Of a stretch of DNA of 64,000 bases, positions 9,979 to 61,402 are shown piece after piece. The stretch lies in the IMG/VR virus record IMGVR_UViG_3300032288_004964, positions 124,001 through 188,000 of that record. One strand, written 5' to 3'. Under the pieces are notes generated by a model. That model saw nothing but the letters and a program-made list of their open reading frames with translations. It did no database searches and was not told the DNA's origin. The translations under genes and the position numbers were made by a program. Within the stretch, counting starts at the first letter, position 1. The number at the start of each line of letters is the position of its first letter.

Positions 9979-10206
9979 ATGAAAACAGGTTCAAGGGATA
10001 TAAATGGTAATTGGGTTGATGAAACACCACAAGCCAAATTAAGAAATATGTTAGGCTCATTTTGGACTTTATCTGAAATTATAAATGATAATCCAGAAAT
10101 TTTAACAGATAAAGAAGGGTTAGAATTGATAAAACAACTAGCTAAAACTTGTGAAGATCATAAAGATATAATTACAAATCTAATTAGCGAAACATGCAAG
10201 AAATAA
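9979..10206 (+). CDS. Hypothetical protein
   Basis: 75-aa ORF with its own promoter-like box. Confidence 0.6.
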   Translation: MKTGSRDINGNWVDETPQAKLRNMLGSFWTLSEIINDNPEILTDKEGLELIKQLAKTCEDHKDIITNLISETCKK

Positions 10207-10253: not shown

Positions 10254-11264
10254 CTACTTTTTAAGTATTTGATGACTCTGAAGTAGTTTATTAAAATCAA
10301 AATAGTCCTTTTCTATTATAAATAGAAAATTATAACCATTCATCACACAATACTTTTCCTTCATTATATTTTTATCCAAATCAATATTATAAGTATAACT
10401 TGATTTTATTTCAATTATCAAATTTAGTTTTTCTATAAAAAAATCAGAATGATATGTGTGATTAGTGTTATTTGATTCTAAGATATATTCAATCGATGGT
10501 CCATTTGAAATTAAATCTATAATATTATTATTTTCACAATAATTCAAAAAATCTAACTCATATGAACCCTGTGTGAATAACTCATCATTATAGTATATTA
10601 TTTTATAAGATGATAGTAATTGTTTTTTAAAAACATTACAATCTTTCATTGGGTTTGTGACACCGTAGTTTAATAAAAAAGAGTTCTTCTTTTTATTCTT
10701 AACCTCTTCTATTTTTGAAACATTATTTACTCCGTAGTTAATTAATAATCTATCAACCATTTTATTTTTTATTTCATCTGATTGACTTGGATGTTTAACT
10801 CCATATCTTCTAATCATTCCTTCGGTCATTAGTTCTCTAATCTTGAAAGGACTATCTACTCCATAATTTAAAAGTGTAGTTTTTGATTTTTTATCTTTTA
10901 TTTCTTTAGATTTAGATGGATTATCTACTCCATAGTTCTTTAAGAAGGTCTTTATTTTTTTATCTTGAAAGTCCTTATTTAGTGATAAGTTATTATTTTT
11001 AAAATAAAATGATCTTTTTTTTAGTCCACAAGTCTTACAACTATAAATTCCATTTCTTTTTACATTTAAATTATATTTTGAATATCTAATTTCAGATTCA
11101 CTATTACATAAATCACAAATAGCAATAATTTTTACTTGAGATGACTTTTTTAAATCAATCACTTTTATTTCAATCTCATCATTTGAAAAGTCATATCCTA
11201 AATTTGAATAGTTTTGTTTTAGACCAGATGTTACTTTAAATTTTATAAATTTATCCTTTATCAT
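10254..11264 (-). CDS. Putative free-standing homing endonuclease (Zn-ribbon, YGV.NP repeats, PD-(D/E)XK-like C-terminus)
   Basis: CDLC and CKTC; five NYGVDNPS-type repeats; YHSDFFI...IIEIKS. Confidence 0.7.
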   Translation of the reverse strand: MIKDKFIKFKVTSGLKQNYSNLGYDFSNDEIEIKVIDLKKSSQVKIIAICDLCNSESEIRYSKYNLNVKRNGIYSCKTCGLKKRSFYFKNNNLSLNKDFQDKKIKTFLKNYGVDNPSKSKEIKDKKSKTTLLNYGVDSPFKIRELMTEGMIRRYGVKHPSQSDEIKNKMVDRLLINYGVNNVSKIEEVKNKKKNSFLLNYGVTNPMKDCNVFKKQLLSSYKIIYYNDELFTQGSYELDFLNYCENNNIIDLISNGPSIEYILESNNTNHTYHSDFFIEKLNLIIEIKSSYTYNIDLDKNIMKEKYCVMNGYNFLFIIEKDYFDFNKLLQSHQILKK

Positions 11265-48076: not shown

Positions 48077-50365
48077 ATGAGTTATAGTTACGATAGATTC
48101 TTAAGACCGATAACATCAACCGATAGAAATATACAAATCTTAGATAATACTGGTATTATTAAATATACTATTAATCCATTTTCTGTCGTTGAGTCGATGG
48201 TTTCTAATAATTTATTAAAAATTAATATAAAGGGTGCTAGAATTATAACTATAAACTTTTCTACATCCAATGAAGCTAAGTTAGCTTTACCTAGATTACA
48301 ACAGCAAATTGATACATTAACTCAGAAAGTACCACTTGTAATTGATAAAGATATAAAAAATTATATAGATAGTGTAGTTGGAAATACTGGCACAAGTGGT
48401 TCATCTGGATCATCTGGTACATCTGGTGTTGATGGTACTTTTTATGGGTCAAGTGGATCTTCTGGTGTAAATGGCACATCTGGTGTTTCTGGTGCTACTG
48501 GTGCTACTGGATCTAATGGATCATCTGGTACATCTGGTACATCTGGTATATCTGGTGGATCTTATGATTATAGTAATGGAATAACTTTAACTGGATTAAC
48601 TGTTAGTTTAGGTGGTACACTTAGTCAAACCGTGATATTAAATGGTGATCTAAATGATTTACTTTTCACAGGATTTGATAACTTGGTTTTTACTAGTTCT
48701 GTATTTGATGTTGTTTCTGATCTTATTAGTTTAGATTCAAATGATTCTACTCAAATATTATCTATTAATGATATTACAATAAATGCTGGTGGTCAAATAT
48801 CTTTAAGTGGTGATTCTGGATTGGTTTCCATTGGAAATACACAAGGTTTAGTTTATCAATCTGATTATAAATTAGGATTTGTAACACACTCATTAGTTGA
48901 TAAGGGTTATGTGGATTTCGCAATTGAAGGTGTGTCTAAATACAGAGGAACTTCTAGTACTCAAATTGTTGTACCTGAAGCTGGATATGTTGTAACATTT
49001 ACTACACAAACTAATTTAGCTTATACACCTGGTGAAACTATTGTAATGTATGATACCTATCCAAACCTATATATGATTGATGATTATGTAGAAGATGGTG
49101 TTAGTGGTAATATAATAGGTACAGTTGATTCATATAATATACTTACTGGTAGTATATCAGTTGTTGTTGATTATTCAGAATCTATTGGTAATACATATAG
49201 TTATTGGTATATAAATTTAAGTGGTAAAACTGGTGTTGGTTTAATTGGAGCTACTGGAGCTACAGGTTTCAGTGGTACTAATGGTACTTCTGGTACAAGT
49301 GGGTCATCTGGTACAAGTGGATCATCTGGTACAAGTGGATCATCTGGGACATCAGGTTCTAGTGGAACATATGGTTCTAGTGGATCATCTGGGACATCAG
49401 GTTCTTCTGGTCCTTCTGGTTTATCTGGTACTTCTGGTACATCCGGTACTTCTCAAAATGTTTCTGCTAGTTATATGAGAGGTTCTCGTTCTACTCAACA
49501 AACCACTAATTTAACTATTAATAGTTTAGTTGCCTTTACCCAAACTGATAATTCAACTGGATCTGATATATCATTGAACACATCAACTGGTCAAATTACA
49601 CTTGCTGCAAATAGAACTTATAGATTATTAGCTCAAGTACCAACTTGGGAAGGATTGAGTGGTGCTAGACCATCTTTTAGATGGTATGATGAAACGTCAG
49701 CCTCTTATATAGGTAGTTTATCAGCCGCTTATAATCCAGGTGATGCTGGTGCTTATGGTGCATTTGGTGGCACATCCGATGTTGTTATCACAACAACACA
49801 AACAACAGTTGTTTCTTTTAGAATAGTTAATGGTACTAACTTATCTGGACTAGGTGGTAACGGTGATTTTAGTACAGGTGGTTCTTATCCTTGGTTTGAT
49901 ATTGAAGTTATATCTGGATATGTACCAATAGTTAATGATACAAGTTTATCTTTATCAGAAACACTTACAGTTACTGGTACTGCTTCTTTTAATGGATTAA
50001 CTGTTTTACAAGAAGTATCTGAAGTTATAAATTCAACACCTGGGGCTACTGCATCAACTGTTATATATGACTTCTCAACAGGTTCTAATTGGTATCATTC
50101 ATCTGCTACTACTAACTATACTGCTAATTTTACAAATATTCCAACAGATAATAATAGAGCAACAACTGTTACTATAGTTATAAATCAAGGTTCAACTGCT
50201 TATATACCAACTGCTGTTCAAATAGGTGGTACTCCATCAACTGTTAAATGGGCTGGTGGTACTGCTTCTGGGAATGCTAATCAAGTCGATATAGTTGGAT
50301 TTACATTTATTAGAAGTGGTAATGCCTGGGCTCAAGTCTTAGGACAAATAAACACTTTTGATTAA
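48077..50365 (+). CDS. Collagen-like (Gly-Thr/Ser-Ser) fibre protein
   Basis: Two G-X-Y tracts (GTS/GSS/GAT); C-terminal VKWAGG..GNANQVDIVG..QVLGQ domain. Confidence 0.75.
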   Translation: MSYSYDRFLRPITSTDRNIQILDNTGIIKYTINPFSVVESMVSNNLLKINIKGARIITINFSTSNEAKLALPRLQQQIDTLTQKVPLVIDKDIKNYIDSVVGNTGTSGSSGSSGTSGVDGTFYGSSGSSGVNGTSGVSGATGATGSNGSSGTSGTSGISGGSYDYSNGITLTGLTVSLGGTLSQTVILNGDLNDLLFTGFDNLVFTSSVFDVVSDLISLDSNDSTQILSINDITINAGGQISLSGDSGLVSIGNTQGLVYQSDYKLGFVTHSLVDKGYVDFAIEGVSKYRGTSSTQIVVPEAGYVVTFTTQTNLAYTPGETIVMYDTYPNLYMIDDYVEDGVSGNIIGTVDSYNILTGSISVVVDYSESIGNTYSYWYINLSGKTGVGLIGATGATGFSGTNGTSGTSGSSGTSGSSGTSGSSGTSGSSGTYGSSGSSGTSGSSGPSGLSGTSGTSGTSQNVSASYMRGSRSTQQTTNLTINSLVAFTQTDNSTGSDISLNTSTGQITLAANRTYRLLAQVPTWEGLSGARPSFRWYDETSASYIGSLSAAYNPGDAGAYGAFGGTSDVVITTTQTTVVSFRIVNGTNLSGLGGNGDFSTGGSYPWFDIEVISGYVPIVNDTSLSLSETLTVTGTASFNGLTVLQEVSEVINSTPGATASTVIYDFSTGSNWYHSSATTNYTANFTNIPTDNNRATTVTIVINQGSTAYIPTAVQIGGTPSTVKWAGGTASGNANQVDIVGFTFIRSGNAWAQVLGQINTFD

Positions 50366-50366
50366 T

Positions 50367-52847
50367 ATGTTTAGTAGATTATCATCATTTTCAGGACCAT
50401 TATCGCCTGTTTTTAGACTACCAGGTGGATTTACACTTAATGGTTTAATTTTAAGATATGTTATAGGAGATACTAACTCTTATTCAGGAACTAGTAGTGT
50501 CATCGACTTACAAGGTAATTCTAATGGAACTTTATACAATGGACAAGATATTGTTGGTATTGGTCCAACATATTCACTTAATGGTTACTTAAATTTTGAT
50601 GGAGTCAATGATTATATTATGACAAATACATCACTTAATTCTAAATTGTCACCAGCAAATACATCAACAATAATATCACATTTTATTTGGATATATCCTC
50701 AGGATAATGGTGTTATTGTCACTGAACAAGGTGATACATCTTTAAATGGTGTTGGTTGGCATGATTCACAAATTGAAATAGTTTCAGGAACATTAAAGTT
50801 TGGTGTTTGGAATGGTATAATTATATCTTCGTCTATTTCAATATCTTTATATAATTGGTACTATGTTGGCTTAACTTATGATGGAATAACACTAAGAGGT
50901 TATGTAAATGGTCAACTTGCCGGATCTATTACTGGTAGTAGATCAACTCCTCAATCAGCTGGTAATGGACTACATTATGCTATTGGTGCTAATGATGGTA
51001 CAAGTTTAGGTGACGGTAGTTATGCTAAAATGAAACTTGGTGATTTTCATGTTTATAATACAGCTCTTAGTCAACAACAAATTCTTAATAATTACAATGC
51101 TACTAAAAATGATTATATTTATACAGGTAGTATGTCTATTTGGATTGATGCGAATGACCCAGCGAGTTTTTCAGGTGGTTCAATTAGTGATTTGAGTGGT
51201 AATGGTTATACACACTCTTTAGTTGCTACTTCATCTACAATATTTGGTTTCAAGTCTTTTAATTGCACAGCGGTGTCAAATAATTATATAAGAGTAAACG
51301 GAACAGGTCCATTATTACCTACATCAGGTTATACATATGTTGCTTGGGCAAGAATTTCAGCAGATTCTTCTACATATAGAACATTATATAGAAGTTCTCC
51401 AAATGATCATGCTCTTTTAGTTCAAATAAATACTGATAATTTAGGATTTTGGGATAATGATTCAAATTCTTTTAAAGATTCTGGTTATGATGTAAGCTCA
51501 ATTGAAGAAAAATGGGTTCAATATTCGGTAGTTGGTGATTCATCTAGTAGTATATTCTATATAAATGATGTAGAAGTTGGTGCAACCAATTCCGGTGCTA
51601 GTGGTAATAGACATGATTACTTTGGTGGTATTGATGGACAACCTTTTGGTTATGTTGGTAATATGATGTTATATAATAAAAAATTATCTCAATCTGAAAT
51701 TAAACAAAATTATGATGCTCTTAAAAATGTTTATAAGAATGGTGATTTTGTAATTAGTAATATAGGTATATCTTTACTACCGTCTAATGCTGGTAGTACT
51801 ATTTGGTCCGATTCAAAAGGCAATTTTAATGCCACAATGTCAGGATCGCCATCATATAATAATACTGGTTATACATTTAATGGAACTTCTCAGTATGGTA
51901 GAATTGTTAGTTCTACAGGTATTACCGATTTTACAAATACAAATAATTATACTATCGAGGTATGGACTAAACCATCTTCAGGACAACCAAATTCAACAAC
52001 AACCATTTTGGAAAAATGGAATTTAGGAAATTCATCAAATTATCCTTATACATTAAGATTTACTGAAGGTTCAAGTACTGCTTATTTTGCTTGTTATGAT
52101 GGAACTAATTTCCCTCAAGGTACTTTAACCGGAGTTTCAGTAGGTAACTGGTATCAATTAGTTGGTGTTTTTAATTTCACCACTGATGTTTTAACAGTTT
52201 ATAAAAATGGTATTTCTGCTGGAACTGCAAGTTTAGTTGGGGTTGGTGGTTTAAGTAATACAAGTCCTGTGGGAATTGCTCATAGAGTAAGTATTGACGG
52301 ATCATCTGCTGAGTTTATGTTTAAGGGTTCAATTGGTATTATAAGAATTTATAGTTCTGCTCTCAGCGCCTCTGATGTATCTAAAAACTTTGAGGCAAAT
52401 AGAAATATTTATGGAATTTCAGACTCGATCACTACAACTACTACGACTGTTGCTCCGACAACTACAACTACTACGACTGTTTTTCAAGGTGGTCCAATAA
52501 GTGAAATCTCCGTTAATCTTGGAATTAATGGTGTTGTTTATACACTAGCTGATGGACATGATTTTGAAAGTGGTCCTTTCGAACAAATGTTTTCAACAAC
52601 TACACTAAATATGTTTACTGCGTTAACCAATTATTTAGGTGATACACCTAATGCTGAATTTAATTTAGATATTACTCAAGTATTTGATAATCAAGGAAAT
52701 CTAGATGGTTATTCAATTAATTTATATCTAAGTACCCCAGGGAATGGATACAATGTTGGTGATATTATAACCATACCTGGAAGTGAAATTGGTGGAACCG
52801 ATAACACTGATGATGACTTAATAATAACTGTTACTTCAATATCATAG
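50367..52847 (+). CDS. Multi-LamG (concanavalin A-like) adhesin/fibre tip protein
   Basis: Three repeats of FDG..DY/FNG..Y...W..V...Y.NG...YN.ALS..I..NY; Thr-rich linker; start at MFSRLS (or 50358). Confidence 0.8.
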   Translation: MFSRLSSFSGPLSPVFRLPGGFTLNGLILRYVIGDTNSYSGTSSVIDLQGNSNGTLYNGQDIVGIGPTYSLNGYLNFDGVNDYIMTNTSLNSKLSPANTSTIISHFIWIYPQDNGVIVTEQGDTSLNGVGWHDSQIEIVSGTLKFGVWNGIIISSSISISLYNWYYVGLTYDGITLRGYVNGQLAGSITGSRSTPQSAGNGLHYAIGANDGTSLGDGSYAKMKLGDFHVYNTALSQQQILNNYNATKNDYIYTGSMSIWIDANDPASFSGGSISDLSGNGYTHSLVATSSTIFGFKSFNCTAVSNNYIRVNGTGPLLPTSGYTYVAWARISADSSTYRTLYRSSPNDHALLVQINTDNLGFWDNDSNSFKDSGYDVSSIEEKWVQYSVVGDSSSSIFYINDVEVGATNSGASGNRHDYFGGIDGQPFGYVGNMMLYNKKLSQSEIKQNYDALKNVYKNGDFVISNIGISLLPSNAGSTIWSDSKGNFNATMSGSPSYNNTGYTFNGTSQYGRIVSSTGITDFTNTNNYTIEVWTKPSSGQPNSTTTILEKWNLGNSSNYPYTLRFTEGSSTAYFACYDGTNFPQGTLTGVSVGNWYQLVGVFNFTTDVLTVYKNGISAGTASLVGVGGLSNTSPVGIAHRVSIDGSSAEFMFKGSIGIIRIYSSALSASDVSKNFEANRNIYGISDSITTTTTTVAPTTTTTTTVFQGGPISEISVNLGINGVVYTLADGHDFESGPFEQMFSTTTLNMFTALTNYLGDTPNAEFNLDITQVFDNQGNLDGYSINLYLSTPGNGYNVGDIITIPGSEIGGTDNTDDDLIITVTSIS

Positions 52848-52986: not shown

Positions 52987-53220
52987 ATGCAAATATCATT
53001 AACAAATCCGAAGAAAGTAGTTTTACAAGAAGAAAAAAGTAAAACAGTAACGACACTAACAGTATCACGAATTGTGGACTTACCGAAGAAGAAAATGGTT
53101 AGAGCTTTTGTAGAAGAATTAGACGAGCCTGTAGTATTATGGGAAGGCGCGGCTTATGATTCAATTGGTCAATGGACTGATGCAAATGTTGAAGCTAGAT
53201 TAGCTGAATTGTATTCATAA
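52987..53220 (+). CDS. Small hypothetical protein (possibly fibre-associated)
   Basis: 77 aa with a late box and its own terminator. Confidence 0.6.
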   Translation: MQISLTNPKKVVLQEEKSKTVTTLTVSRIVDLPKKKMVRAFVEELDEPVVLWEGAAYDSIGQWTDANVEARLAELYS

Positions 53221-53238: not shown

Positions 53239-53265
53239 AAAACCCTCTTAAAAAGAGGGTTTTTT
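53239..53265 (+). terminator. Intrinsic terminator
   Basis: AAAACCCTCTT-AAA-AAGAGGGTTTTTT. Confidence 0.8.
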
Positions 53266-53270
53266 ATTTT

Positions 53271-53297
53271 AAACTAAATTGTAATAAATCATATAAT
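53271..53297 (+). promoter_or_regulatory. AAACTA-N15-TATAAT putative promoter
   Basis: Same architecture at 27204-27230, 44020-44046(-), 56273-56299(-) and 20974-20999(-). Confidence 0.55.
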
Positions 53298-53313
53298 AAA
53301 TAAAACTTTTTTA

Positions 53314-54195
53314 ATGTATTCAATATTTCACATAGAAGGAGGAATTGGTAAGAATATTTTAGCAACCGCAGTTATTGATTCCCTCAAGAAAACAGACCCA
53401 GAAAGAAAAATCATTTTAGTTTCAGCTTGGCCTCAAGTTTGGTTTAACAACCCAAACATTGAACAAATATTCCCAATGGGTCAAGTCGCTAACTTTTATA
53501 AAAACTTTATCAAAGACCAAGATGTAAAAATATTCCGTGTTGATCCTTATCATACAGAAGATTATATCCTAAATAAAAAACATTTAATTGAAATTTGGTG
53601 TGATTTAGTTGGAGCTAAATATGATGGAGAACTACCTAAACTTTACTTTTCACCTTTAGAGTTGGAAGGAATTAGATCAAAAATTTTACAAGGAGTAAGT
53701 AAACCTATTTTTTTACTACACACAAATGGTGGTGGTTCTGGTCCTAAATCAAGACCTTATTCTTGGTATAGAGACATACCAATGCAAAATGCTGTAGATA
53801 TTGTTAACTACTTCAAAAATGATTATCATATCTATCAACTTGGATATCAAGGACAATCTTTAATACCAGGTTGTAATAAATTAACTTTAGAAACTAGAGA
53901 AATTTTAGCAGCTCCTCTTTTTTCTAAAAAGAGATTATTAATTGATTCTTTTTCTCAACATGCTTCAGTTGCACTTGGTATGCAATCAGTTGTTTGTTGG
54001 GTTGGAAATAAACCTGAGGTTTTAGGTTATGATAGTCATCTTAATATAAAACCTGTTGCTAAACCCGTATTTGACACTTACCACTCATCTTACTTAGATG
54101 ATTTTGATATTGGAGGTAATCCAGTTCAATTCCCTTATGATAAATTGAAAGTATTTGATTCAAACGAAATAATAAATAAATTATTAACATTATGA
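53314..54195 (+). CDS. Glycosyltransferase, GT9/heptosyltransferase-like (GT-B)
   Basis: GGIGKNILAT.VI..LK...P; F.NNPNI; LLIDSFSQHASVALG. Confidence 0.7.
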   Translation: MYSIFHIEGGIGKNILATAVIDSLKKTDPERKIILVSAWPQVWFNNPNIEQIFPMGQVANFYKNFIKDQDVKIFRVDPYHTEDYILNKKHLIEIWCDLVGAKYDGELPKLYFSPLELEGIRSKILQGVSKPIFLLHTNGGGSGPKSRPYSWYRDIPMQNAVDIVNYFKNDYHIYQLGYQGQSLIPGCNKLTLETREILAAPLFSKKRLLIDSFSQHASVALGMQSVVCWVGNKPEVLGYDSHLNIKPVAKPVFDTYHSSYLDDFDIGGNPVQFPYDKLKVFDSNEIINKLLTL

Positions 54196-54998
54196 GAAAA
54201 ATTCATTATATAGGTGGTCTACCGAGAAGTGGGTCAACTTTATTAACAAACATTCTTTTACAGAATCCAAAATTTGCTACAACAGCAACATCTTCTCTTT
54301 TAGACTTTCTCTTACAAGTAAGAGATAATTGGAATAAATTAGAAGGACATAAAGTTTATGAAGAAGGCCAGGATAAATGGGCAGTTATCAGAGCAATTAT
54401 GTATAACTATCACAAAACTGATAAAGAAGTTATCTTCGATAAAAACAGAGGTTGGTCTACACATATTGAATTTATGGAAAAAGCAACTGGTGAAGGAGTT
54501 AAAATAATTGCTTGTGTTAGAAATCTTGAAGATATCTGTTCTTCTTTTGAAAAACTATTTAGAAAGAATAGAGCTGATGGTGAAATACACGGTGAATTTT
54601 CTAATCCTAAAATGAAAAATAGAGAAGGTAGAGTTGGTGTTTGGACATCAGATGAAGGAGTTATAGGAAGACCTTATATTTCTTTATTAGATACAATCCA
54701 AAGAGGTTTAGGTGATAGAATATTATTCTTCCCATATGAAGAATGGTCATCTAATCCTGACTTCTGGTTTAAGAAATTATATGAGTTTGTAGGTGAAGAA
54801 TATTACCAACATGATTTTAATAATATCGAACAAGTTATTAGAGAAAATGATGCTGGTTATGGTTGGGGATCTGATTTGCATGAAATTAAAAATGGTAGAT
54901 TATTACCAGCTAAATCAGATGCTATTGAAATATTAGGTAGAGATTGGTTTGTTAAATTACATGACACAGAATTCTGGAAGACTAAGAAAAAGAAATAA
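54192..54998 (+). CDS. PAPS-dependent sulfotransferase
   Basis: 5'-PSB loop GLPRSGSTLL; 3'-PB IIACVRN..DI.SS; YEE...P. Confidence 0.85.
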   Translation: MRKIHYIGGLPRSGSTLLTNILLQNPKFATTATSSLLDFLLQVRDNWNKLEGHKVYEEGQDKWAVIRAIMYNYHKTDKEVIFDKNRGWSTHIEFMEKATGEGVKIIACVRNLEDICSSFEKLFRKNRADGEIHGEFSNPKMKNREGRVGVWTSDEGVIGRPYISLLDTIQRGLGDRILFFPYEEWSSNPDFWFKKLYEFVGEEYYQHDFNNIEQVIRENDAGYGWGSDLHEIKNGRLLPAKSDAIEILGRDWFVKLHDTEFWKTKKKK

Positions 54999-54999
54999 T

Positions 55000-55032
55000 A
55001 AAAAAACCTCTCAAATTTGAGAGGTTTTTTTT
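55000..55032. terminator. Bidirectional intrinsic terminator
   Basis: AAAAAACCTCTCAAATTTGAGAGGTTTTTT palindrome. Confidence 0.85.
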
Positions 55033-55237
55033 ATTCATCCATTTTAATAAATTTATACCAAAATCTTTCATGTATAAAGTAGATAATAGGTTTTAAGACT
55101 AACTCACTAACACCTAATAAAGAAGCAATTTTAAGAGGTGCCCCTAACAATGTAGCTGTTATAACTGTTGTTAAAGTTCCTAAAATTCTATATGTTATAG
55201 TTTTATAAAGGTGTCTCTTTATAGCTTTATCCTTCAT
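55031..55237 (-). CDS. DUF2061-like small membrane protein
   Basis: RHLYKTITYRILGT...K.IIYFIHER.W. Confidence 0.8.
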   Translation of the reverse strand: MKDKAIKRHLYKTITYRILGTLTTVITATLLGAPLKIASLLGVSELVLKPIIYFIHERFWYKFIKMDE

Positions 55238-55685
55238 TTACCATTAGATTTTTTATTACATCTTCTTGTATAGACTCGTGAACCATTGTTCTCCAAGAAT
55301 CATCACCATTCTTAATAGAATCTCTGATTTTTGTAGCTGAGATAAATGCGATGTCACCTGGAGGTGTAAACTCATTTATTTCATAACCAACACCTCTTCC
55401 ATAATTAACAGATTCAATATCAGGGATAATCATTACTTTAACATCATCATTTTTAGCAGCATGATACTTCTCAATCATTTCTACTGTTTGTTCAGTTGTA
55501 AAAGGATTCTTTTCATCTGGTTCGATGTCTCTAACCATAATTAAAGCTGGTATACCTGCATCTAATTTTTGTTGAATTAATTCAATATGTCCATAATGAT
55601 AAGGTTGGTATCTACCTACAAAGATAGCATACTTTTTATCTGGATTCTTAGTGGGTTCTCCACCGTGATTTACTTTTGACCACAT
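55227..55685 (-). CDS. HxGH nucleotidyltransferase (cytidylyltransferase-like)
   Basis: FVGRYQPYHYGH; NPF; YGRGVGY; ISATKIR. Confidence 0.8.
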   Translation of the reverse strand: MWSKVNHGGEPTKNPDKKYAIFVGRYQPYHYGHIELIQQKLDAGIPALIMVRDIEPDEKNPFTTEQTVEMIEKYHAAKNDDVKVMIIPDIESVNYGRGVGYEINEFTPPGDIAFISATKIRDSIKNGDDSWRTMVHESIQEDVIKNLMVNEG

Positions 55686-55686
55686 A

Positions 55687-56268
55687 TTATTTGTTATTTT
55701 TTAATATTAACTCAGTAAGAAAGTTTACATTTTTTTCTAAATCTTCTTCTGTGTTATTTTTTAGTACTGTTGCATTTTGAGGAGTTTCAAAAGGAGATGA
55801 GATTCCTGTAAATTCTTTAATTTCACCAGCTCTTGCTTTTTTGTAAAGACCTTTAGGGTCTCTAGTTTCACAAGTAGAAAGTTCAGCATCAATGAAAATT
55901 TCCATAAATCCTTCACCAATAATTTCTTTAGCTTGGTTTCTATTCTTTTCAAATGGAGAGATAAAAGAACAGATTACAATTAGACCAGCATCATTCATAA
56001 GTTTACAAACTTCTGAAACCCTTCTAATGTTTTCTACTCTTGCTTCTTCTGAGAATCCTAAATCTTTGTTAAGACCCATTCTAGTGTTATCACCATCTAA
56101 AATATAGGTGTGATATCCCAAACTGATTAGTTTTTCTTCAACTAAATTAGCAATAGTTGATTTTCCTGAACCGGATAATCCAGACATCCAAATGGTACAA
56201 GCCTTTTGATTTTTGATAGATTCACGGTTTTCTTTTGTTGTTTTAAAATTGTGCGTAGTTATATTCAT
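55687..56268 (-). CDS. cysC: Adenylyl-sulfate (APS) kinase
   Basis: GLSGSGKST; LDGD..R; R.ENIRR; FISP; RDPKGLY.KAR.GEI..FTGI. Confidence 0.95.
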   Translation of the reverse strand: MNITTHNFKTTKENRESIKNQKACTIWMSGLSGSGKSTIANLVEEKLISLGYHTYILDGDNTRMGLNKDLGFSEEARVENIRRVSEVCKLMNDAGLIVICSFISPFEKNRNQAKEIIGEGFMEIFIDAELSTCETRDPKGLYKKARAGEIKEFTGISSPFETPQNATVLKNNTEEDLEKNVNFLTELILKNNK

Positions 56269-56371
56269 ATGAATTATATTTTACAGAGTCTATTTGTTTT
56301 AAAAAATCACATAAAAGAATTTTTTTACATTATAATTTTAATATATACTCTATAAAAAATATTTTTTAACT

Positions 56372-59300
56372 ATGCCAACACAAAGTTTAGTACTTAGAGG
56401 TTTAATCGGAAGAAGACTAACCATCGAAGAAATGGATGGAAACTTCACATATTTAGAGTCATTAGCTCAAGAACAAGGAGATCAACCAAATCATCAAATT
56501 GCAATAGGAACAGGCACTGGTCTGACTTCATCTGAAAATTTTACATTTGATTATGAGTGTAATAATTTAATATCAGGTAATAATACCATTTGTTCTTGTT
56601 CATCAGAATCTAGTATCATTGGTGGTAATAACAATTGTGTTACTTGTTCTTATGAATCTAGTATCATTGGTGGTCATAACAATTGTGTTGTTTGTTCAGG
56701 TGGATCAACAATCATTGGTGGTTTTAATAACACGGTTACCTACTGTGCTGATTATTCTTCAATTGTTGGTGGTAGAAATAATACTATAAATGGTAGTTGT
56801 TATTATAATACTTATTACTCTTCTATAGTTGGTGGTGAGTATAATACTATTGGTTTAGGATCTTGTGATGCTAGTATAATAGGTGGTTCAGATAATTCTG
56901 TTGATTATTCTTGTAAAGCTGGTATCTTTTCTGGTGTTAGTAGTCATATATGTGATTATTCAGAAAGATCTACTATCTTAGGAGGTTCTCAAGATAGAAT
57001 ATCAAATGAATCTTGTAGATCTACTATTGTTGGTGGTTTTAGAAACTGTATTGTTGATGGTTCTTGTAATTCATCTGTTATGTCTGGATGTTGTAATGAT
57101 ATCTGTTATGGATCAGACAACTCTGTGATATCTGGTGGTTATTGTAATGAGATATGTTGTTACTCTTGTGAGTCTTCTATTATTGGTGGTATTCGTAATA
57201 CAATTAATTGTCAAACTTGTCAATCTACTATTGTTGGTGGGTATTGTAATAGAATTTCAAGCAATGAAGGTTCTGTGGTTTTGGGTGGTCGTTATAATGA
57301 TGTTTGTTGTAGTTCAAACTACACTGTAATATCAGGTTCTAATAATAAAATTTGTTGTGAATCTTGTAATTCATCTATTCTTGGTGGTAATTTTAATATA
57401 GTAGACGGATATTCTTGTAATTCATCTATTATCGGTGGTCAATCTAACTGCATTTGTGGTTCTAATTATGTATCTGGTCCTTATTCTTGTAAGTGTGATT
57501 ATGGTTCTTGTAATTCAGTTATTCTTGGTGGATGTTGTAATCAAATAATTTGTGATTCAGACAACACATCAATTATTGGTGGATGTTGTAATCAAGTTGT
57601 TGGTGATGGTGGTTCTGGAAGAAACTCTATTGTAGGTGGTGCTGATAACACAATTTGTTATTCAGATCACTCGGCAATTATTGGAGGTGAACAAAACAAA
57701 ATTTATGGAGAATCAGATTATTCTGTTATTATTGGTGGATGTTATGGTTTTATTTATGAAACACAATACTCTGCTATAATTGGTGGATGTTGTAATACAA
57801 TATGTATAGGTGGTAATAATGGCAATGGATATGGTGTTATTTTAGGTGGTGGTTCCAATACTTTAAATTGCTATTCTAATAATTCTGGAATTCTAGGTGG
57901 ATATTGTAATACTATAGATTGTTACTCAACTAAATCATCAATTATTGGAGGTGAATCAAATTTAATTATTACAAGTGGTCTTACTGCTAGTGATAATTAT
58001 GGTGTTTATAATGTTTGTCTTGGTGGTAACTCAATTATTGGTGGTCTTACAAATAGTATCATTGATTCTGAAAACTCAGTTATCTTAGGTGGTACTGGTT
58101 TAACATTAGCTACTCAAAGTAACACTGTTTTAGTTCCTCACTTAAAAATTAATAATTTAGATGTTTGTAACTCAGATGATAGAATATTAGTATCTGATGC
58201 TTTTGGTAATATTAATTATAGAGAAGCTTCTACATTAGGTGGAGGTGGTTCATTCTATTCTTGTTGTAATACATTGGATAATACTTCGGTTTCAAATATT
58301 ATAGGCGGTTGTTATAACACAATATGTAATTCTTTTGAGAGTACTATAATCGGTGGTGAAAATAACTATTTATGTGAAGTTGGATTAGGATCTACTATTG
58401 TAGGTGGTATTTGTAATACAATTAATAATGGCGTAGATGCTTCTGGTATTTTTGCTGGTAGATGTAATAAAATTTGTGGAAATAGTGATGGAAATTATTA
58501 TTCAGCTATTATTGGTGGTTATTGTAACTTAATATCAGATGGTAATGAAAGTTCTGTAATCTTAGGTGGTTGTCGTAACTGTATATGTGATTATTCTTAC
58601 AATTCTATGATATCATCTGGGTGTTGTAATTATATATGTGAGTCTGATAGAACATCTATTATAGCGGGGCGTTGTAATACAATTTGTTGTTCTTCAGAGG
58701 ATTCTGTAATTATGGGTGGTTGTTATAATAGAATTGATAGAAACTCTGATAGATCATCTATTGTTGGTGGTGGTTGGAACTCAATTTGTACATATTCTTC
58801 TAGATCAGGTATTCTTGCTGGTTCTGGTAATCATATTTATGATGGATCTTGTCATTCTACAATTGTAGGTGGTCATTGTAACCATATTTATAATTATTCT
58901 TGTCATTCTACAATTGTAGGTGGTGAATGTAACACATTATATAATGACGCTATTAACTCTACAATCAATGGTGGATTTAGAAACTGCTTAGATAGTGTTT
59001 ATAACTCATCAATCTTAGGTGGATATAGAAACTGTGCTCACTATACAATCAACTCAACAATTGTTGGTGGATGTAGAAATATGATATATTATGGTTCTAA
59101 TGAAGGTGCTATATTAGGTGGTGGTTGTAATTCTATTTCTGGTAGTTCTTATCAAGCATCAATTGTTGGTGGTAGATGTAATGAAATAAACAATCATTCT
59201 CATGACTCTTCAATAATTGGGGGTTATAATAACTCAATTTATAGTTGTTCGGAAAAATCTACAATTGTTGGTGGTTTTGATAACTGTATTTGTTGTTCAA

Positions 59301-61402
59301 ATAACTCTGGTATAATTGGTGGTTATAATAATGAGATTTTTGAATCAAGTAGATCTTTAATCTTAGGTGGTTCAAATATGACTCTTAATAATGAAGATGA
59401 TACAGTTTTAGTAAATCGTCTTAAAATTGATACTCTTCAAAATGAACCAGGTGATACTAGAATTGTTACTGCTGATTCTGATGGTAGAATTAGATACAGA
59501 ACAGTTTCTGGTTTAGTTCCAGAATTTGGAGGTATTGTAAATGGCGCTACTAATTCAATGACTGGATTTATGAATAGTATTTATAACTCTAATAATGGTT
59601 CAGTTGTTGGTGGTTCTTATAATGGTGTAACATCTTCAAATTCATCTTCAATAATTGGAGGTGATGCTGGTGTAATTAGTTGTTCACCTGAATCAAGTAT
59701 TATTGGAGGTCAATGTAACACTATATGTTGTTACTCTTGTGACTCATCAATTATAGGTGGTTGTAACAACCACCTAAATTGTAGTTCTAGTTTATCATCT
59801 ATAATTGGTGGTGGTTGTAACACTATAAATTGTTTTTCTATTAGCTCAGCAGTAATTGGTGGTTATCGTAACTTTACATGTAATTACGCAATTGAATCAT
59901 CTGTAATTGGTGGTAGATGTAATAGTGTTTATAACACCTCTTGTAAATCATCTGTAATTGGTGGTTACTATAACTGTATTTATAATGGATCTTGTGAATC
60001 ATCTATTATTGGAGGTCGTGATAACTGTATTTATAACGGAGCTTGTGATTCATCTATCATCGGTGGTGAATGGAACAGAGTTGCTTGGGGTACTTATAAC
60101 TCAACAGTTATTGGCGGTGATTGGAATAGAGTATTCGATTCTTGTGGGGCATCAGTAGTTGGTGGAGCTGGTAATAGAGTAAATGAAACTTATAGATCTG
60201 GTATTTTTGAAGGACATTGTAATCATATTTGTTGTTATTCTGATGATTCTACTATTGTAGGTGGTCACTATAACTGTATTGAGTATTATTCTTGCCAATC
60301 TTCTATAATTGGTGGATGTTGTAATGAAATCTGTTGTACTAATTACGCTTCTATTGTAGGTGGTGCTTGTAACCATATCTGTCAGCGTTCTTATTATTCA
60401 TCTATACTTGGTGGATGTTATAACTGCGTTGTTGATTATTCTTGTTATTCATCTATCTTAGGTGGTGGAAGAAACTGTATTTATAACTCTGATTATACAT
60501 CTATAATTGGTGGTAGATACACTTGTTTAGATAACTCTGATTACTCATCTGTAATTGGTGGATGTTGTAATGGTATGTATAATTCAAGCTACTCATCTGT
60601 AATTGGTGGATGTTGTAATAGACAAACATATTCCGATTTAGCATCTATTGTTGGTGGATATTGTAACTGTATCTGGTCAGGTGATTGCTCAAGTATCATT
60701 GGTGGTTATGGTAATCGATTATGTGGTGGTTATTACGGTGATGACTCAAGAGGATCTTCAATTTTCGGTGGTAATTATAACTGTATGTATAATGGTGTTT
60801 GTAGATCTTCAATTATTGGCGGTTATAGTAATGAAATAAAATGTTACTCTTGTGATTCATCAATAATTGGTGGTTGTAATAATGGAATTTGTTGTGCTTC
60901 TTGTCAATCTTCTATTATTGGTGGTTGTAACAATTATATGTGCTGTTCTTGTAACTCAGTTATATTAGGTGGACAAGATTTAGATGTTTGTAATATAGAC
61001 AATACAGTATTCATGAATGGTACAACTTGGTTAAAACAAACAGTTGAGACATCATTTGAAACTACTGTAAGTGCTGCCACTTTTAGTGTTAACTTTTTAG
61101 AGGGTGGTATTAAATACTTATCATCATTAAGTAATGACTTCCAAGTTGACTTTACAAACTTTCCTGATCCTACTATTGCCAACTCTGTTATAACTTATAC
61201 ATTAATCTTAAATCAAGGTGTTACTCCTTATATGATTACTGGATTAACTATAAATGGTGGTGGTACTCAAACAATTAAGTGGAATGGTGGAAATGTTCCT
61301 ACCGGTAACGCTAATCAAGTTGATACAATAGGTTTAATGTTTGTTTATAATAGTACAGGTTTATTAAGTCAAGTATTGGGTCAAGTTGGAACATTTGCAT
61401 AA
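56372..61402 (+). CDS. Giant cysteine-rich repeat fibre protein (S-x-I-x-GG-x-x-N beta-solenoid)
   Basis: Dozens of 16-17-aa repeats; N-terminal LT..EMDGNF; C-terminal IKWNGG..GNANQVD..QVLGQ domain. Confidence 0.8.
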   Translation: MPTQSLVLRGLIGRRLTIEEMDGNFTYLESLAQEQGDQPNHQIAIGTGTGLTSSENFTFDYECNNLISGNNTICSCSSESSIIGGNNNCVTCSYESSIIGGHNNCVVCSGGSTIIGGFNNTVTYCADYSSIVGGRNNTINGSCYYNTYYSSIVGGEYNTIGLGSCDASIIGGSDNSVDYSCKAGIFSGVSSHICDYSERSTILGGSQDRISNESCRSTIVGGFRNCIVDGSCNSSVMSGCCNDICYGSDNSVISGGYCNEICCYSCESSIIGGIRNTINCQTCQSTIVGGYCNRISSNEGSVVLGGRYNDVCCSSNYTVISGSNNKICCESCNSSILGGNFNIVDGYSCNSSIIGGQSNCICGSNYVSGPYSCKCDYGSCNSVILGGCCNQIICDSDNTSIIGGCCNQVVGDGGSGRNSIVGGADNTICYSDHSAIIGGEQNKIYGESDYSVIIGGCYGFIYETQYSAIIGGCCNTICIGGNNGNGYGVILGGGSNTLNCYSNNSGILGGYCNTIDCYSTKSSIIGGESNLIITSGLTASDNYGVYNVCLGGNSIIGGLTNSIIDSENSVILGGTGLTLATQSNTVLVPHLKINNLDVCNSDDRILVSDAFGNINYREASTLGGGGSFYSCCNTLDNTSVSNIIGGCYNTICNSFESTIIGGENNYLCEVGLGSTIVGGICNTINNGVDASGIFAGRCNKICGNSDGNYYSAIIGGYCNLISDGNESSVILGGCRNCICDYSYNSMISSGCCNYICESDRTSIIAGRCNTICCSSEDSVIMGGCYNRIDRNSDRSSIVGGGWNSICTYSSRSGILAGSGNHIYDGSCHSTIVGGHCNHIYNYSCHSTIVGGECNTLYNDAINSTINGGFRNCLDSVYNSSILGGYRNCAHYTINSTIVGGCRNMIYYGSNEGAILGGGCNSISGSSYQASIVGGRCNEINNHSHDSSIIGGYNNSIYSCSEKSTIVGGFDNCICCSNNSGIIGGYNNEIFESSRSLILGGSNMTLNNEDDTVLVNRLKIDTLQNEPGDTRIVTADSDGRIRYRTVSGLVPEFGGIVNGATNSMTGFMNSIYNSNNGSVVGGSYNGVTSSNSSSIIGGDAGVISCSPESSIIGGQCNTICCYSCDSSIIGGCNNHLNCSSSLSSIIGGGCNTINCFSISSAVIGGYRNFTCNYAIESSVIGGRCNSVYNTSCKSSVIGGYYNCIYNGSCESSIIGGRDNCIYNGACDSSIIGGEWNRVAWGTYNSTVIGGDWNRVFDSCGASVVGGAGNRVNETYRSGIFEGHCNHICCYSDDSTIVGGHYNCIEYYSCQSSIIGGCCNEICCTNYASIVGGACNHICQRSYYSSILGGCYNCVVDYSCYSSILGGGRNCIYNSDYTSIIGGRYTCLDNSDYSSVIGGCCNGMYNSSYSSVIGGCCNRQTYSDLASIVGGYCNCIWSGDCSSIIGGYGNRLCGGYYGDDSRGSSIFGGNYNCMYNGVCRSSIIGGYSNEIKCYSCDSSIIGGCNNGICCASCQSSIIGGCNNYMCCSCNSVILGGQDLDVCNIDNTVFMNGTTWLKQTVETSFETTVSAATFSVNFLEGGIKYLSSLSNDFQVDFTNFPDPTIANSVITYTLILNQGVTPYMITGLTINGGGTQTIKWNGGNVPTGNANQVDTIGLMFVYNSTGLLSQVLGQVGTFA

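Follow-up and report, generated by a model that had tools for sequence, protein, structure and literature searches.

A phage gene cassette predicted to form PAPS and transfer sulfate, with a candidate minimal ATP sulfurylase

A giant freshwater phage carries a set of five genes that most likely converts sulfate into the activated donor PAPS and uses it to sulfate a target, which may be the virion, the host envelope or DNA. The small 152-aa HxGH nucleotidyltransferase (NT) of this set belongs to a widespread, unnamed family that looks like an unrecognised minimal ATP sulfurylase, a reading to which we assign a probability of about 0.6. It is inferred from comparative genomics and not from an assay, in a family for which no enzymology exists for any member.

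Organization of the cassette

We analyzed a window of 64,000 nucleotides, positions 124,001 to 188,000 of the IMG/VR record IMGVR_UViG_3300032288_004964. An earlier note, based on the sequence alone, had described a glycosylation-sulfation cassette of two convergent operons between two fibre modules: a GT9-like glycosyltransferase plus sulfotransferase, and CysC plus an HxGH nucleotidyltransferase plus DUF2061. This observation was confirmed, as the five genes are real and form two convergent units separated by a hairpin. The features of the region are as follows.

52987-53220 (+), small 77-aa ORF upstream of the + unit, without Pfam or NCBIfam hit
53239-53263, bidirectional terminator-like hairpin separating the upstream genes from the + unit (11-bp stem with 4 GC pairs, T-runs on both strands)
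53268-53297 (+), promoter-like site for the + unit, consensus match only (TTTAAA-18-TATAAT, 10 of 12 matches)
53314-54195 (+), 293-aa putative GT-B / GT9-like glycosyltransferase, weak assignment
54192-54998 (+), 268-aa PAPS-dependent sulfotransferase, overlapping the previous ORF by 4 bp
55000-55031, bidirectional terminator-like hairpin between the convergent units (14-bp stem flanked by A-runs and T-runs, with T-runs on both sides)
55031-55237 (-), 68-aa DUF2061 membrane hairpin protein, its start overlapping the NT stop by 11 bp
55227-55685 (-), 152-aa HxGH nucleotidyltransferase, candidate minimal ATP sulfurylase (sulfate adenylyltransferase)
55687-56268 (-), 193-aa APS kinase (CysC)
56273-56302 (-), promoter-like site for the - unit, consensus match only (TTAAAA-18-TATAAT, 10 of 12 matches)

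Promoter-like sites were not enriched over shuffled sequences. Upstream of the cassette lie a collagen-repeat tail-fibre-like protein (48077-50365) and a Laminin_G_3 virion protein (50358-52847), while downstream we found a 1676-aa Cys-rich repeat protein with no family hit. A fibre module is therefore shown on one side and only plausible on the other. The cassette is conserved in relatives, so it is not a chance arrangement, and a homologue of the 77-aa ORF lies close to it in 10 of 48 viral loci.

Family assignment of the encoded proteins

Profile searches identified three of the proteins well. The 193-aa protein is a bona fide APS kinase, matching APS_kinase (PF01583) with 219.8 bits, TIGR00455 with 240.8 bits (cutoff 138.7) and PRK03846 with 248.2 bits (cutoff 163); it matches solved APS kinases at E 1e-54 and contains the P-loop, L-D-G-D-N-x-R and F-x-S-P (FISP) motifs. 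The 268-aa protein matches Sulfotransfer_3 (PF13469; 49.1 bits, cutoff 27), Sulfotransfer_1 (PF00685; 39.7 bits, cutoff 22) and phrog_27463 (E 1.8e-41), and both PAPS-binding motifs are intact, the 5'-phosphosulfate loop P-R-S-G-S-T and the 3'-phosphate motif R-N-L-E-D-I-C-S-S. Its best PDB match was protein-tyrosine sulfotransferase, over the PAPS loop only (E 0.05). The 68-aa protein matches DUF2061 (PF09834; 48 bits, cutoff 23.1); its relatives are 145-148 aa and carry an extra N-terminal domain of about 80 aa that is missing here.

The "GT9-like" label of the 293-aa protein is only a lead. There was no Pfam, NCBIfam or PDB sequence hit, none of 15 family members hit PF01075 even at E 10, and an hhalign comparison with a weak PF01075-hit paralogue gave a probability of 0.5%. 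The AlphaFold model (pLDDT 48) was too poor to search. The only support is that the ESM Atlas places the protein in viral clusters whose feature and structure neighbours carry PF01075 (TM 0.75-0.81).

The 152-aa protein matches CTP_transf_like (PF01467; 33.5 bits, cutoff 21) and was modelled by AlphaFold with pLDDT 95.5. Its closest solved relatives are archaeal NMN adenylyltransferase (NMNAT; E 1.3e-6, Z 14.2 to 1f9a) and PPAT (Z 12.9), not Sat. However, it scores far below the cutoffs for archaeal NMNAT (TIGR01527 / PRK01153; 46.1 bits against 181.2, and 51.2 against 127) and for PPAT (27 against 103), and below cutoff for all NMNAT and PPAT equivalogs. The ATP-binding motifs G-R-x-Q-P-x-H-x-G-H (here G-R-Y-Q-P-Y-H-Y-G-H) and I-S-x-T-x-x-R are present and nearly invariant in the family. 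In contrast, about 25-30 residues of archaeal NMNAT between its fourth strand and the R-G-Y-E-V segment, which includes its NMN-binding residues, have no counterpart: HMM alignments jump from 1f9a residue ~71 to ~109 across only about 10 family positions, and the pairwise alignment skips 1f9a residues 101-123. They are replaced by a nearly invariant, family-specific N-Y-G-R-x-V-G-Y (N-Y-G-R-G-V-G-Y in the window), containing the G-R-x-x-G-Y motif.

The NT is not a member of the Sat family. The window NT gave no PF01747 hit at E <= 0.1, with only a sub-threshold hit (21.6 bits, cutoff 24.3) in one fused relative, P0128, and no Sat chain appeared in profile-versus-PDB sequence searches. The Sat motifs Q-x-R-N-P-x-H-x-x-H and G-R-D-(H/P)-A-G were not found in the NT or, by motif scan, in the window. 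The HxxH Rossmann-like catalytic fold is nevertheless shared, as the model aligns with residues 151-347 of T. thermophilus ATP sulfurylase 1v47 over 131 residues at Z 10.1 and 21% identity, and with other Sat structures at Z 7-8. The NT belongs to the same superfamily as Sat but derives from its archaeal NMNAT/PPAT branch.

Genomic context of the nucleotidyltransferase family

To examine the function of the NT, we compared the neighborhoods of its relatives. Among representatives at 50% identity, NT homologues are fused to genuine APS_kinase domains in both orders (APSK-NT in P0121, P0123, P0129 and P0134; NT-APSK in P0128, P0131, P0150 and P0155). In 58 of 80 species-representative cellular loci the NT is fused (44) or adjacent (14) to APS kinase, and in 47 of 48 viral loci an APS_kinase-family ORF is fused to or abuts the NT. 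DUF2061 is adjacent to the NT in 46 of the 48 viral loci, whereas the sulfotransferase is present in 19 and the GT-like gene in 14, next to the sulfotransferase. In phages the conserved core is APS kinase, NT and DUF2061, with the sulfotransferase and glycosyltransferase as variable add-ons. Synteny with fibre genes, which the earlier note had proposed to check, holds only in the window's close lineage.

A 74%-identical copy in the same well-supported clade was found in a Nitrospiraceae locus (L017), which reads Rrf2/CymR-like regulator, sulfite reductase (+TusA), thioredoxin-dependent APS reductase (TIGR02055; 273 bits, cutoff 235) and NT. This is a sulfate-assimilation operon with the NT in the ATP-sulfurylase slot and without APS kinase, although the evidence rests on one MAG contig. 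CysQ-like Inositol_P genes lie near the NT/APSK module in 6 loci, abutting it in the three archaeal ones (L045-L047) and 0.8-3.4 kb away in the three Bacteroidota ones, and sulfotransferases lie next to it in loci L007, L009, L013, L138 and others.

A crude motif search found no Sat-type motif pair in 2.25 Mb of loci plus the window, and no CysD, CysN, CysH or CysQ homologue occurs in the window or in the 48 viral loci. The exception among the loci is the Acidobacteriota locus L006 (and its duplicate, L010), in which a true CysD and CysN lie divergently next to an NT-APSK fusion, and where the NT is at best redundant. In the Dadabacteria / Thermodesulfobacteriota lineage, the NT stands alone beside housekeeping genes (Leu/Phe-tRNA transferase, class-I glutamine amidotransferase), with no sulfur gene within 10 kb. 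As only 64 kb of a genome of at least 385 kb, about a sixth, was examined, a canonical sulfurylase elsewhere in the phage or in the host cannot be excluded.

Proposed function and alternative explanations

Based on these data, we propose that the region is a phage-borne sulfate-activation and sulfotransfer cassette. The - unit would be a self-contained PAPS-supply module, in which the NT adenylylates sulfate (ATP + sulfate > APS + PPi) and the adjacent APS kinase immediately pulls this unfavourable reaction forward by making PAPS. The kinase step is shown by strong homology and the sulfotransferase function at the family level, and the latter protein, with both PAPS-binding motifs, needs PAPS locally; catalysis by the NT is inferred, supported by genomic context only. 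The translationally coupled DUF2061 protein may be a membrane anchor or a sulfate entry route, which is speculative. The + unit would be a lineage-specific acceptor module that uses PAPS to sulfate a glycan or another acceptor. In this view the NT family appears to replace Sat or CysDN. The interpretation of the earlier note was partly supported: its central inference of a minimal ATP sulfurylase completing sulfate to APS to PAPS agrees with comparative genomics, but its link to Sat-type enzymes requires the correction given above, and its sulfated glycan on fibres or on the host surface remains a hypothesis.

It is possible, although unlikely, that the NT is an accessory partner of APS kinase that binds or hands over APS, or runs a side reaction on APS or PAPS, with APS supplied by a canonical Sat or CysDN of the host or from elsewhere in the phage genome. 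The CysD and CysN genes of L006 and the unseen part of the phage genome are in favor of this. In contrast, the catalytic motifs are nearly invariant, the NT of L017 follows APS reductase in the absence of APS kinase, and canonical sulfurylases are absent from all loci except L006 and its duplicate.

With respect to the target only, it is doubtful but possible that PAPS is used to sulfate hypermodified phage DNA, for example a glycosylated hydroxymethyl base, rather than virion fibres or the host envelope. In phage locus L125, DUF2061, a short APS kinase and the NT directly follow a Tet_JBP dioxygenase, a Sulfotransfer_2 protein and a weak TET-associated glycosyltransferase, next to ParB and the terminase; in locus L005 the cassette lies near two Dam-type methyltransferases, and phage DNA glycosyltransferases are often GT-B. 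However, the TET island is not conserved in the relatives of L125, the cassette sits among structural genes in the window and its closest relatives, and no sulfated DNA base is known. A more far-reaching combination, which we consider improbable, is that APS kinase, NT and DUF2061 constitute a portable, complete sulfate uptake-and-activation kit built around a third, minimal class of ATP sulfurylase, and that in at least some phages it feeds a sulfotransferase acting on glycosylated or hydroxymethylated phage DNA, which would be a new kind of DNA hypermodification rather than sulfation of a surface glycan.

It is also unlikely that the NT is an NMN, NaMN or other phosphate-ester adenylyltransferase (NadM/NadR-like NAD salvage, PPAT-like) without a link to sulfate activation. 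Its best sequence and structure matches are of this type, and NAD salvage genes are common in large phages (PMC11662467). Nevertheless, the equivalog scores and the missing NMNAT segment speak against it, the systematic fusion or adjacency is to APS_kinase and not to an RNK-type kinase, a Nudix domain or NAMPT, and the recurrent neighbors are sulfotransferases, CysQ and APS reductase. Least likely is a pathway like that of Campylobacter jejuni, in which Cj1415-Cj1418 make CDP-phosphoramidate 3'-phosphate, a PAPS analogue (PMC11800397), so that the NT (as Cj1416) would make a different NDP-X such as a nucleoside diphosphoramidate precursor, the CysC-like kinase (as Cj1415) would 3'-phosphorylate it and the "sulfotransferase" would transfer a non-sulfate group: class-I glutamine amidotransferase genes do lie next to the standalone NT in Dadabacteria, but no glutamine kinase or Cj1417-type hydrolase is in the cassette or the viral loci, the kinase passes the APS-kinase equivalog cutoff by 100 bits, the transferase matches PAPS sulfotransferase families, and L017 links the NT to APS reductase and sulfite reductase.

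Comparison with known systems and implications

ATP sulfurylase is the entry step of all sulfate assimilation and sulfation, and only two enzyme types, Sat and CysDN, are recognised. If the NT family does this job, a third type of 130-150 residues would exist in phages, Bacteroidota, Nitrospirota, Dadabacteria, CPR bacteria and archaea. These proteins are currently annotated only as "cytidyltransferase-like" or hidden inside "adenylyl-sulfate kinase" entries, and metabolic reconstructions that score organisms as unable to activate sulfate would need revising. Huge phages would carry their own complete PAPS supply, combined with different acceptor modules, which points to sulfated virion, host-envelope or DNA modifications that nobody has looked for.

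Sat-type homo-oligomeric ATP sulfurylases (PF01747; e.g., T. thermophilus 1v47, yeast 1j70) catalyze the proposed reaction and are often fused or adjacent to APS kinase, but contain about 350-570 aa and a PUA-like N-domain that the NT lacks. Archaeal NMNATs (M. jannaschii MJ0541, 1f9a; M. thermautotrophicus, 1ej2) and bacterial PPAT are of similar size to the NT, whose genomic partners are sulfur-activation genes and not NAD or CoA genes. Bifunctional PAPS synthases (animal PAPSS, APSK-ATPS; fungal and bacterial Sat-CysC, e.g., Aquifex 2gks) follow the same two-step logic with fusion in either order, although the adenylyltransferase half here is a different, much smaller family. The GTPase-coupled CysDN/NodPQ sulfurylase, with NodH-type sulfotransferases, likewise represents dedicated PAPS-supply genes inside a sulfated-glycan gene cluster, but has an unrelated fold (PAPS_reduct-type CysD plus the GTPase CysN) and was found beside the NT family only in L006. 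The C. jejuni pathway shares 3'-phosphorylation, by an APS-kinase homologue, of the NDP-X made by a partner nucleotidyltransferase, but it needs a glutamine kinase and a hydrolase, which are absent here, and the transferred group and the transferases also differ. Among the cysC auxiliary metabolic genes of large phages and giant viruses, an APS kinase encoded by a large phage has already been reported as common (PMC13172472); that report treats cysC alone, and the constant NT and DUF2061 partners and the sulfotransferase link were not described in any paper that we could find. We found no evidence for the suggestion of the earlier note regarding Bacteroidota glycan-uptake systems, although a Bacteroidota link of the host is consistent with the nearest cellular CysC-NT pairs.

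Gene content of the probable sulfation cassette

The window has a G+C content of 28-31% and carries phage genes, including a UvsX-like recombinase, tail-fibre proteins and a homing endonuclease. It is part of IMGVR_UViG_3300032288_004964, a viral contig of 385,333 bp, and the public DNA runs that hold the stretch are freshwater, lake and groundwater metagenomes; the genome is therefore that of a huge freshwater phage. Between 53271 and 56299, five ORFs were found at the positions reported in the earlier note, organized as two convergent units, and the observation made in that note is confirmed. The features are as follows:

53239-53263: hairpin which, together with promoter-like sites, bounds the units
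53314-54195 (+): 293-aa ORF, labelled 'GT9-like' in the earlier note
54192-54998 (+): 268-aa ORF, sulfotransferase family, overlapping the previous ORF by 4 bp
55000-55031: hairpin with a 14-bp stem, flanked by T-runs on both strands, on which the two units converge
55237 to 55031 (-): 68-aa DUF2061 protein, whose start overlaps the stop of the nucleotidyltransferase by 11 bp
55685 to 55227 (-): 152-aa nucleotidyltransferase (NT)
56268 to 55687 (-): CysC, APS kinase

CysC passed the curated APS-kinase equivalog cutoff by about 100 bits (TIGR00455 at 240.8 against 138.7) and matched solved APS kinases at E 1e-54. The 268-aa protein matched Sulfotransfer_3 and Sulfotransfer_1 above their thresholds and shows both the 5'-phosphosulfate loop (P-R-S-G-S-T) and the 3'-phosphate motif (R-N-L-E-D-I-C-S-S); it should therefore use PAPS. 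Its only similarity in the PDB is to tyrosylprotein sulfotransferases over the PAPS loop (E 0.05), which says nothing reliable about the acceptor. The 68-aa protein is a DUF2061 membrane hairpin. In nearly all relatives (for example at 8449-8886 of locus L001) this protein is 145-148 aa and carries an additional N-terminal soluble domain of about 80 aa, which this phage has cleanly lost, so that only the two-helix hairpin remains. A homologue search and an ESM Atlas search with DUF2061 returned only viral DUF2061 proteins and gave no functional clue, while the papers that mention DUF2061 appear, judging from their titles and abstracts, to concern unrelated topics.

The label 'GT9-like' for the 293-aa protein could not be confirmed statistically. 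No hit was obtained in Pfam, NCBIfam or the PDB for the protein itself, and none for its 15-member family, either in a profile search against the PDB or when Pfam was searched with all 15 members at E 10; an hhalign comparison with a neighbouring paralogue that is itself a weak GT9 match also gave nothing. AlphaFold on a 15-sequence alignment produced a model with pLDDT 48, which was not used for fold searches. The ESM Atlas places the protein in purely viral clusters whose feature and structure neighbours carry PF01075, with TM 0.75-0.81, and its N-terminus bears an informal resemblance to the GT9 N-terminal signature. We treat it as a probable GT-B glycosyltransferase.

Sequence and predicted structure of the nucleotidyltransferase

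The 152-aa NT matched CTP_transf_like, and its nearest characterised relatives are archaeal NMN adenylyltransferases (1f9a, E 1.3e-6), followed by PPAT, although it scored far below every NMNAT and PPAT equivalog cutoff. The AlphaFold model, built on a 40-sequence alignment, is confident (pLDDT 95.5). Foldseek against the PDB listed only PPAT and NMNAT among the top 50 matches, and Sat appeared only with a wider structural aligner, in which the model superposed best on NMNAT (Z 14.2) and PPAT (Z 12.9), with the catalytic domain of Thermus thermophilus ATP sulfurylase at Z 10.1 and 21% identity over 131 residues. The NT therefore shares the superfamily with Sat but is not a member of the Sat family, having no PF01747 hit and no Sat motifs. 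In the family alignment, the ATP-side motifs F-I-G-R-W-Q-P-x-H-x-G-H and I-S-A-T-x-I-R are nearly invariant, as is a family-specific I-P-D-I-E-S-V-N-Y-G-R-x-V-G-Y. In HMM alignments to NMNAT, about 25-30 residues between strand 4 and the R-G-Y-E-V segment have no counterpart; in the archaeal enzymes this segment includes the NMN-binding residues. A smaller, anionic acceptor held by the invariant Arg is a reasonable reading, although it is an inference.

Genomic context of the nucleotidyltransferase family

The main evidence on function comes from the genes beside which relatives of the NT are found. An exhaustive search of 1.84 billion cluster representatives identified 1188 relatives, many of which are about 300-380 aa; of ten such proteins scanned, eight are fusions with genuine APS_kinase domains (140-230 bits for most), and both orders, APSK-NT and NT-APSK, occur. 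In cellular species-representative genomes, queried with a 7-sequence alignment, 80 loci were compared: 44 have the NT fused to APS kinase, 14 have the kinase within 500 bp, 1 has it 3.5 kb away, and 21 have no APS kinase within 10 kb. Loci L058-L088 (mostly Alphaproteobacteria) carry APS-kinase-NT fusions of about 260-290 aa whose NT half scores lower and lacks the exact G-R-x-x-G-Y motif, and they may represent a sister subfamily. In 48 loci from viral contigs, an APS_kinase-family ORF is fused to or abuts the NT in 47, whereas the 48th is cut off by the contig end; in many phages the kinase is a short form of 148-152 aa (Pfam 68-73 bits), and in others it is full-length. In addition, among phage records (H3-H13 in our search), siphophages of Xylella, Xanthomonas and Stenotrophomonas encode a 230-aa kinase + NT fusion (phrog_10255, annotated 'kinase' or 'adenylylsulfate kinase'), e.g., Xylella phages Salvo and Sano near 15.6-16.1 kb, although both halves match the window's CysC and NT only weakly. 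In the one record whose hit also overlaps a neighbouring gene (H3, Stenotrophomonas phage Bhz60), that neighbour is a DNA methyltransferase.

Sulfotransferases and glycosyltransferases recur as neighbours in loci L006, L007, L009, L013 and L138, and CysQ-like inositol-monophosphatase-family genes occur in six loci from Bacteroidota and Methanosarcinales. NT, APS kinase, CysQ and a sulfotransferase together make up the full PAPS cycle, with the NT where Sat or CysDN normally stands. The most telling locus is L017, from the Nitrospiraceae MAG NP85, in which the gene order is a Rrf2/CymR-like regulator, a sulfite reductase with a TusA domain, a thioredoxin-dependent APS reductase (TIGR02055 at 273 bits; cutoff 235) and then the NT. 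This is an assimilatory sulfate-reduction operon that lacks only an ATP sulfurylase, although the argument rests on one MAG contig. The NT of L017 is 74% identical to the phage protein and lies in the same well-supported clade (99/97).

Canonical sulfurylases are almost never found nearby. CysD was detected only in the Acidobacteriota locus L006 (retrieved a second time as L010), a Sat motif pair was found nowhere in 2.25 Mb, and nothing resembling CysD, CysN, CysH or CysQ occurs in the viral loci or in the window, which covers 64 kb of a genome of at least 385 kb. Contrary evidence also exists. In L006 a genuine CysD and CysN are divergently adjacent to an NT-APSK fusion, and there the NT is redundant or does something else. 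In chromosomes of Dadabacteria and related Thermodesulfobacteriota (L016, L018-L028, L030, L031 and L035, around position 10000), the NT (about 68% identical) stands alone next to a Leu/Phe-tRNA-protein transferase and a class-I glutamine amidotransferase, with no APS kinase within 10 kb. This arrangement is uninformative, although it faintly recalls the Campylobacter jejuni phosphoramidate pathway, in which a nucleotidyltransferase, a hydrolase and a CysC homologue cooperate.

Proposed function and alternatives

Weighing these observations, we estimate a probability of about 0.6 that the NT is a minimal ATP sulfurylase. The earlier note had inferred that this protein may be such an enzyme, completing the route from sulfate to APS to PAPS, and its interpretation is partly supported: this key inference gains independent comparative evidence but remains unproven, while neither the GT9 label nor a target on the fibres or the host surface has been established. 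The identities of CysC, the sulfotransferase family and DUF2061, and the association of the NT family with APS kinase, are shown by sequence comparison, whereas catalysis of APS formation by the NT and the nature of its acceptor are inferred from context and alignment alone. The principal alternative, which we regard as unlikely but not negligible, is an accessory role next to a canonical sulfurylase. An unrelated NMNAT-like function is less likely still. A NadR/PnuC-like NAD salvage reading of kinase, NT and membrane protein was considered and rejected, since the kinases match APS_kinase and not the RNK-type family AAA_28, and DUF2061 is a two-helix hairpin. Of the three alternatives that were weighed, NDP-X synthesis of the Cj1416 type is the least likely.

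PAPS synthesis combined with sulfotransfer is a known kind of system, and cysC is already reported as a frequent auxiliary gene of large phages (PMC13172472); what differs here is the presence of a candidate new class of a central enzyme. Literature searches for a small or novel ATP sulfurylase, or for a phage sulfotransferase together with cysC, found nothing relevant, and we found no paper that describes the small nucleotidyltransferase as a sulfurylase, the trio of APS kinase, NT and DUF2061, or a phage PAPS-plus-sulfotransferase cassette. Public annotation calls these proteins 'cytidyltransferase-like' or, for the fusions, simply 'adenylyl-sulfate kinase'.

Architecture of the module in phages

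Across the 48 viral loci the invariant set is APS kinase, NT and DUF2061, with DUF2061 present in 46 and the two exceptions being truncated contigs. A sulfotransferase lies within 10 kb in 19 loci and the GT-like gene in 14, whereas the fibre-type neighbours of the window recur only in its close lineage. Other lineages attach different modules. The viral locus L115 carries a GT2/DUF5672 protein, and in L094 (9040-9999) and L115 (9025-9990) the APS kinase upstream of the NT carries a C-terminal HAD-type hydrolase domain, which could be a pyrophosphatase or a PAP phosphatase that pulls the pathway forward. In L125 (6668-12000), from a smaller phage, the order is ParB, a weak TET-associated glycosyltransferase, Sulfotransfer_2, a Tet_JBP dioxygenase, DUF2061, a short APS kinase, the NT and then the large terminase. 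This hints at sulfation linked to DNA hypermodification and raises DNA as a possible target; however, the island is not conserved in the relatives of this phage (L128-L137), and we therefore give it low weight for the window. The trio therefore behaves as a portable PAPS-supply kit, whereas the acceptor chemistry is variable. Given that DUF2061 travels with the supply genes rather than with the acceptor genes, we think that its role lies on the supply side, as a membrane anchor or a sulfate entry route, although this is speculation.

Origin, expression and flanking genes

The phage NT groups with CysC-NT pairs of uncultured Bacteroidetes single-cell genomes (76-78% identity for the NT and 54-57% for CysC), and also with Flavobacteriales MAGs. 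The possibility that the single-cell loci L012, L014 and L015 are phage contigs was rejected, since they share only CysC and the NT with the window. The grouping fits gene exchange with a Bacteroidota host, without proving the host. One lake metatranscriptome contains contigs of 85-90%-similar relatives that cover the sulfotransferase end, the NT and CysC; as DNA carry-over cannot be excluded, this does not prove transcription.

Downstream of the cassette, at 56372-61402 (+), the window encodes a 1676-aa protein with 8.2% Cys, 14% Ser and 15% Gly, which has about 59 copies of a 16-17-residue unit (S-S-I-I-G-G-x-x-N-type) and no Pfam or PHROG hit. It is probably a solenoid fibre or adhesin, and a homologue (29-59% identity) lies near the cassette in 14 of 48 viral loci. 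Just upstream of the cassette, a 77-aa ORF without an assigned function (52987-53220, +) recurs beside the cassette in 10 viral loci. A homing-endonuclease-like ORF with PHROG hits is present at 10254-11264 (-), in the replication and recombination region near UvsX.
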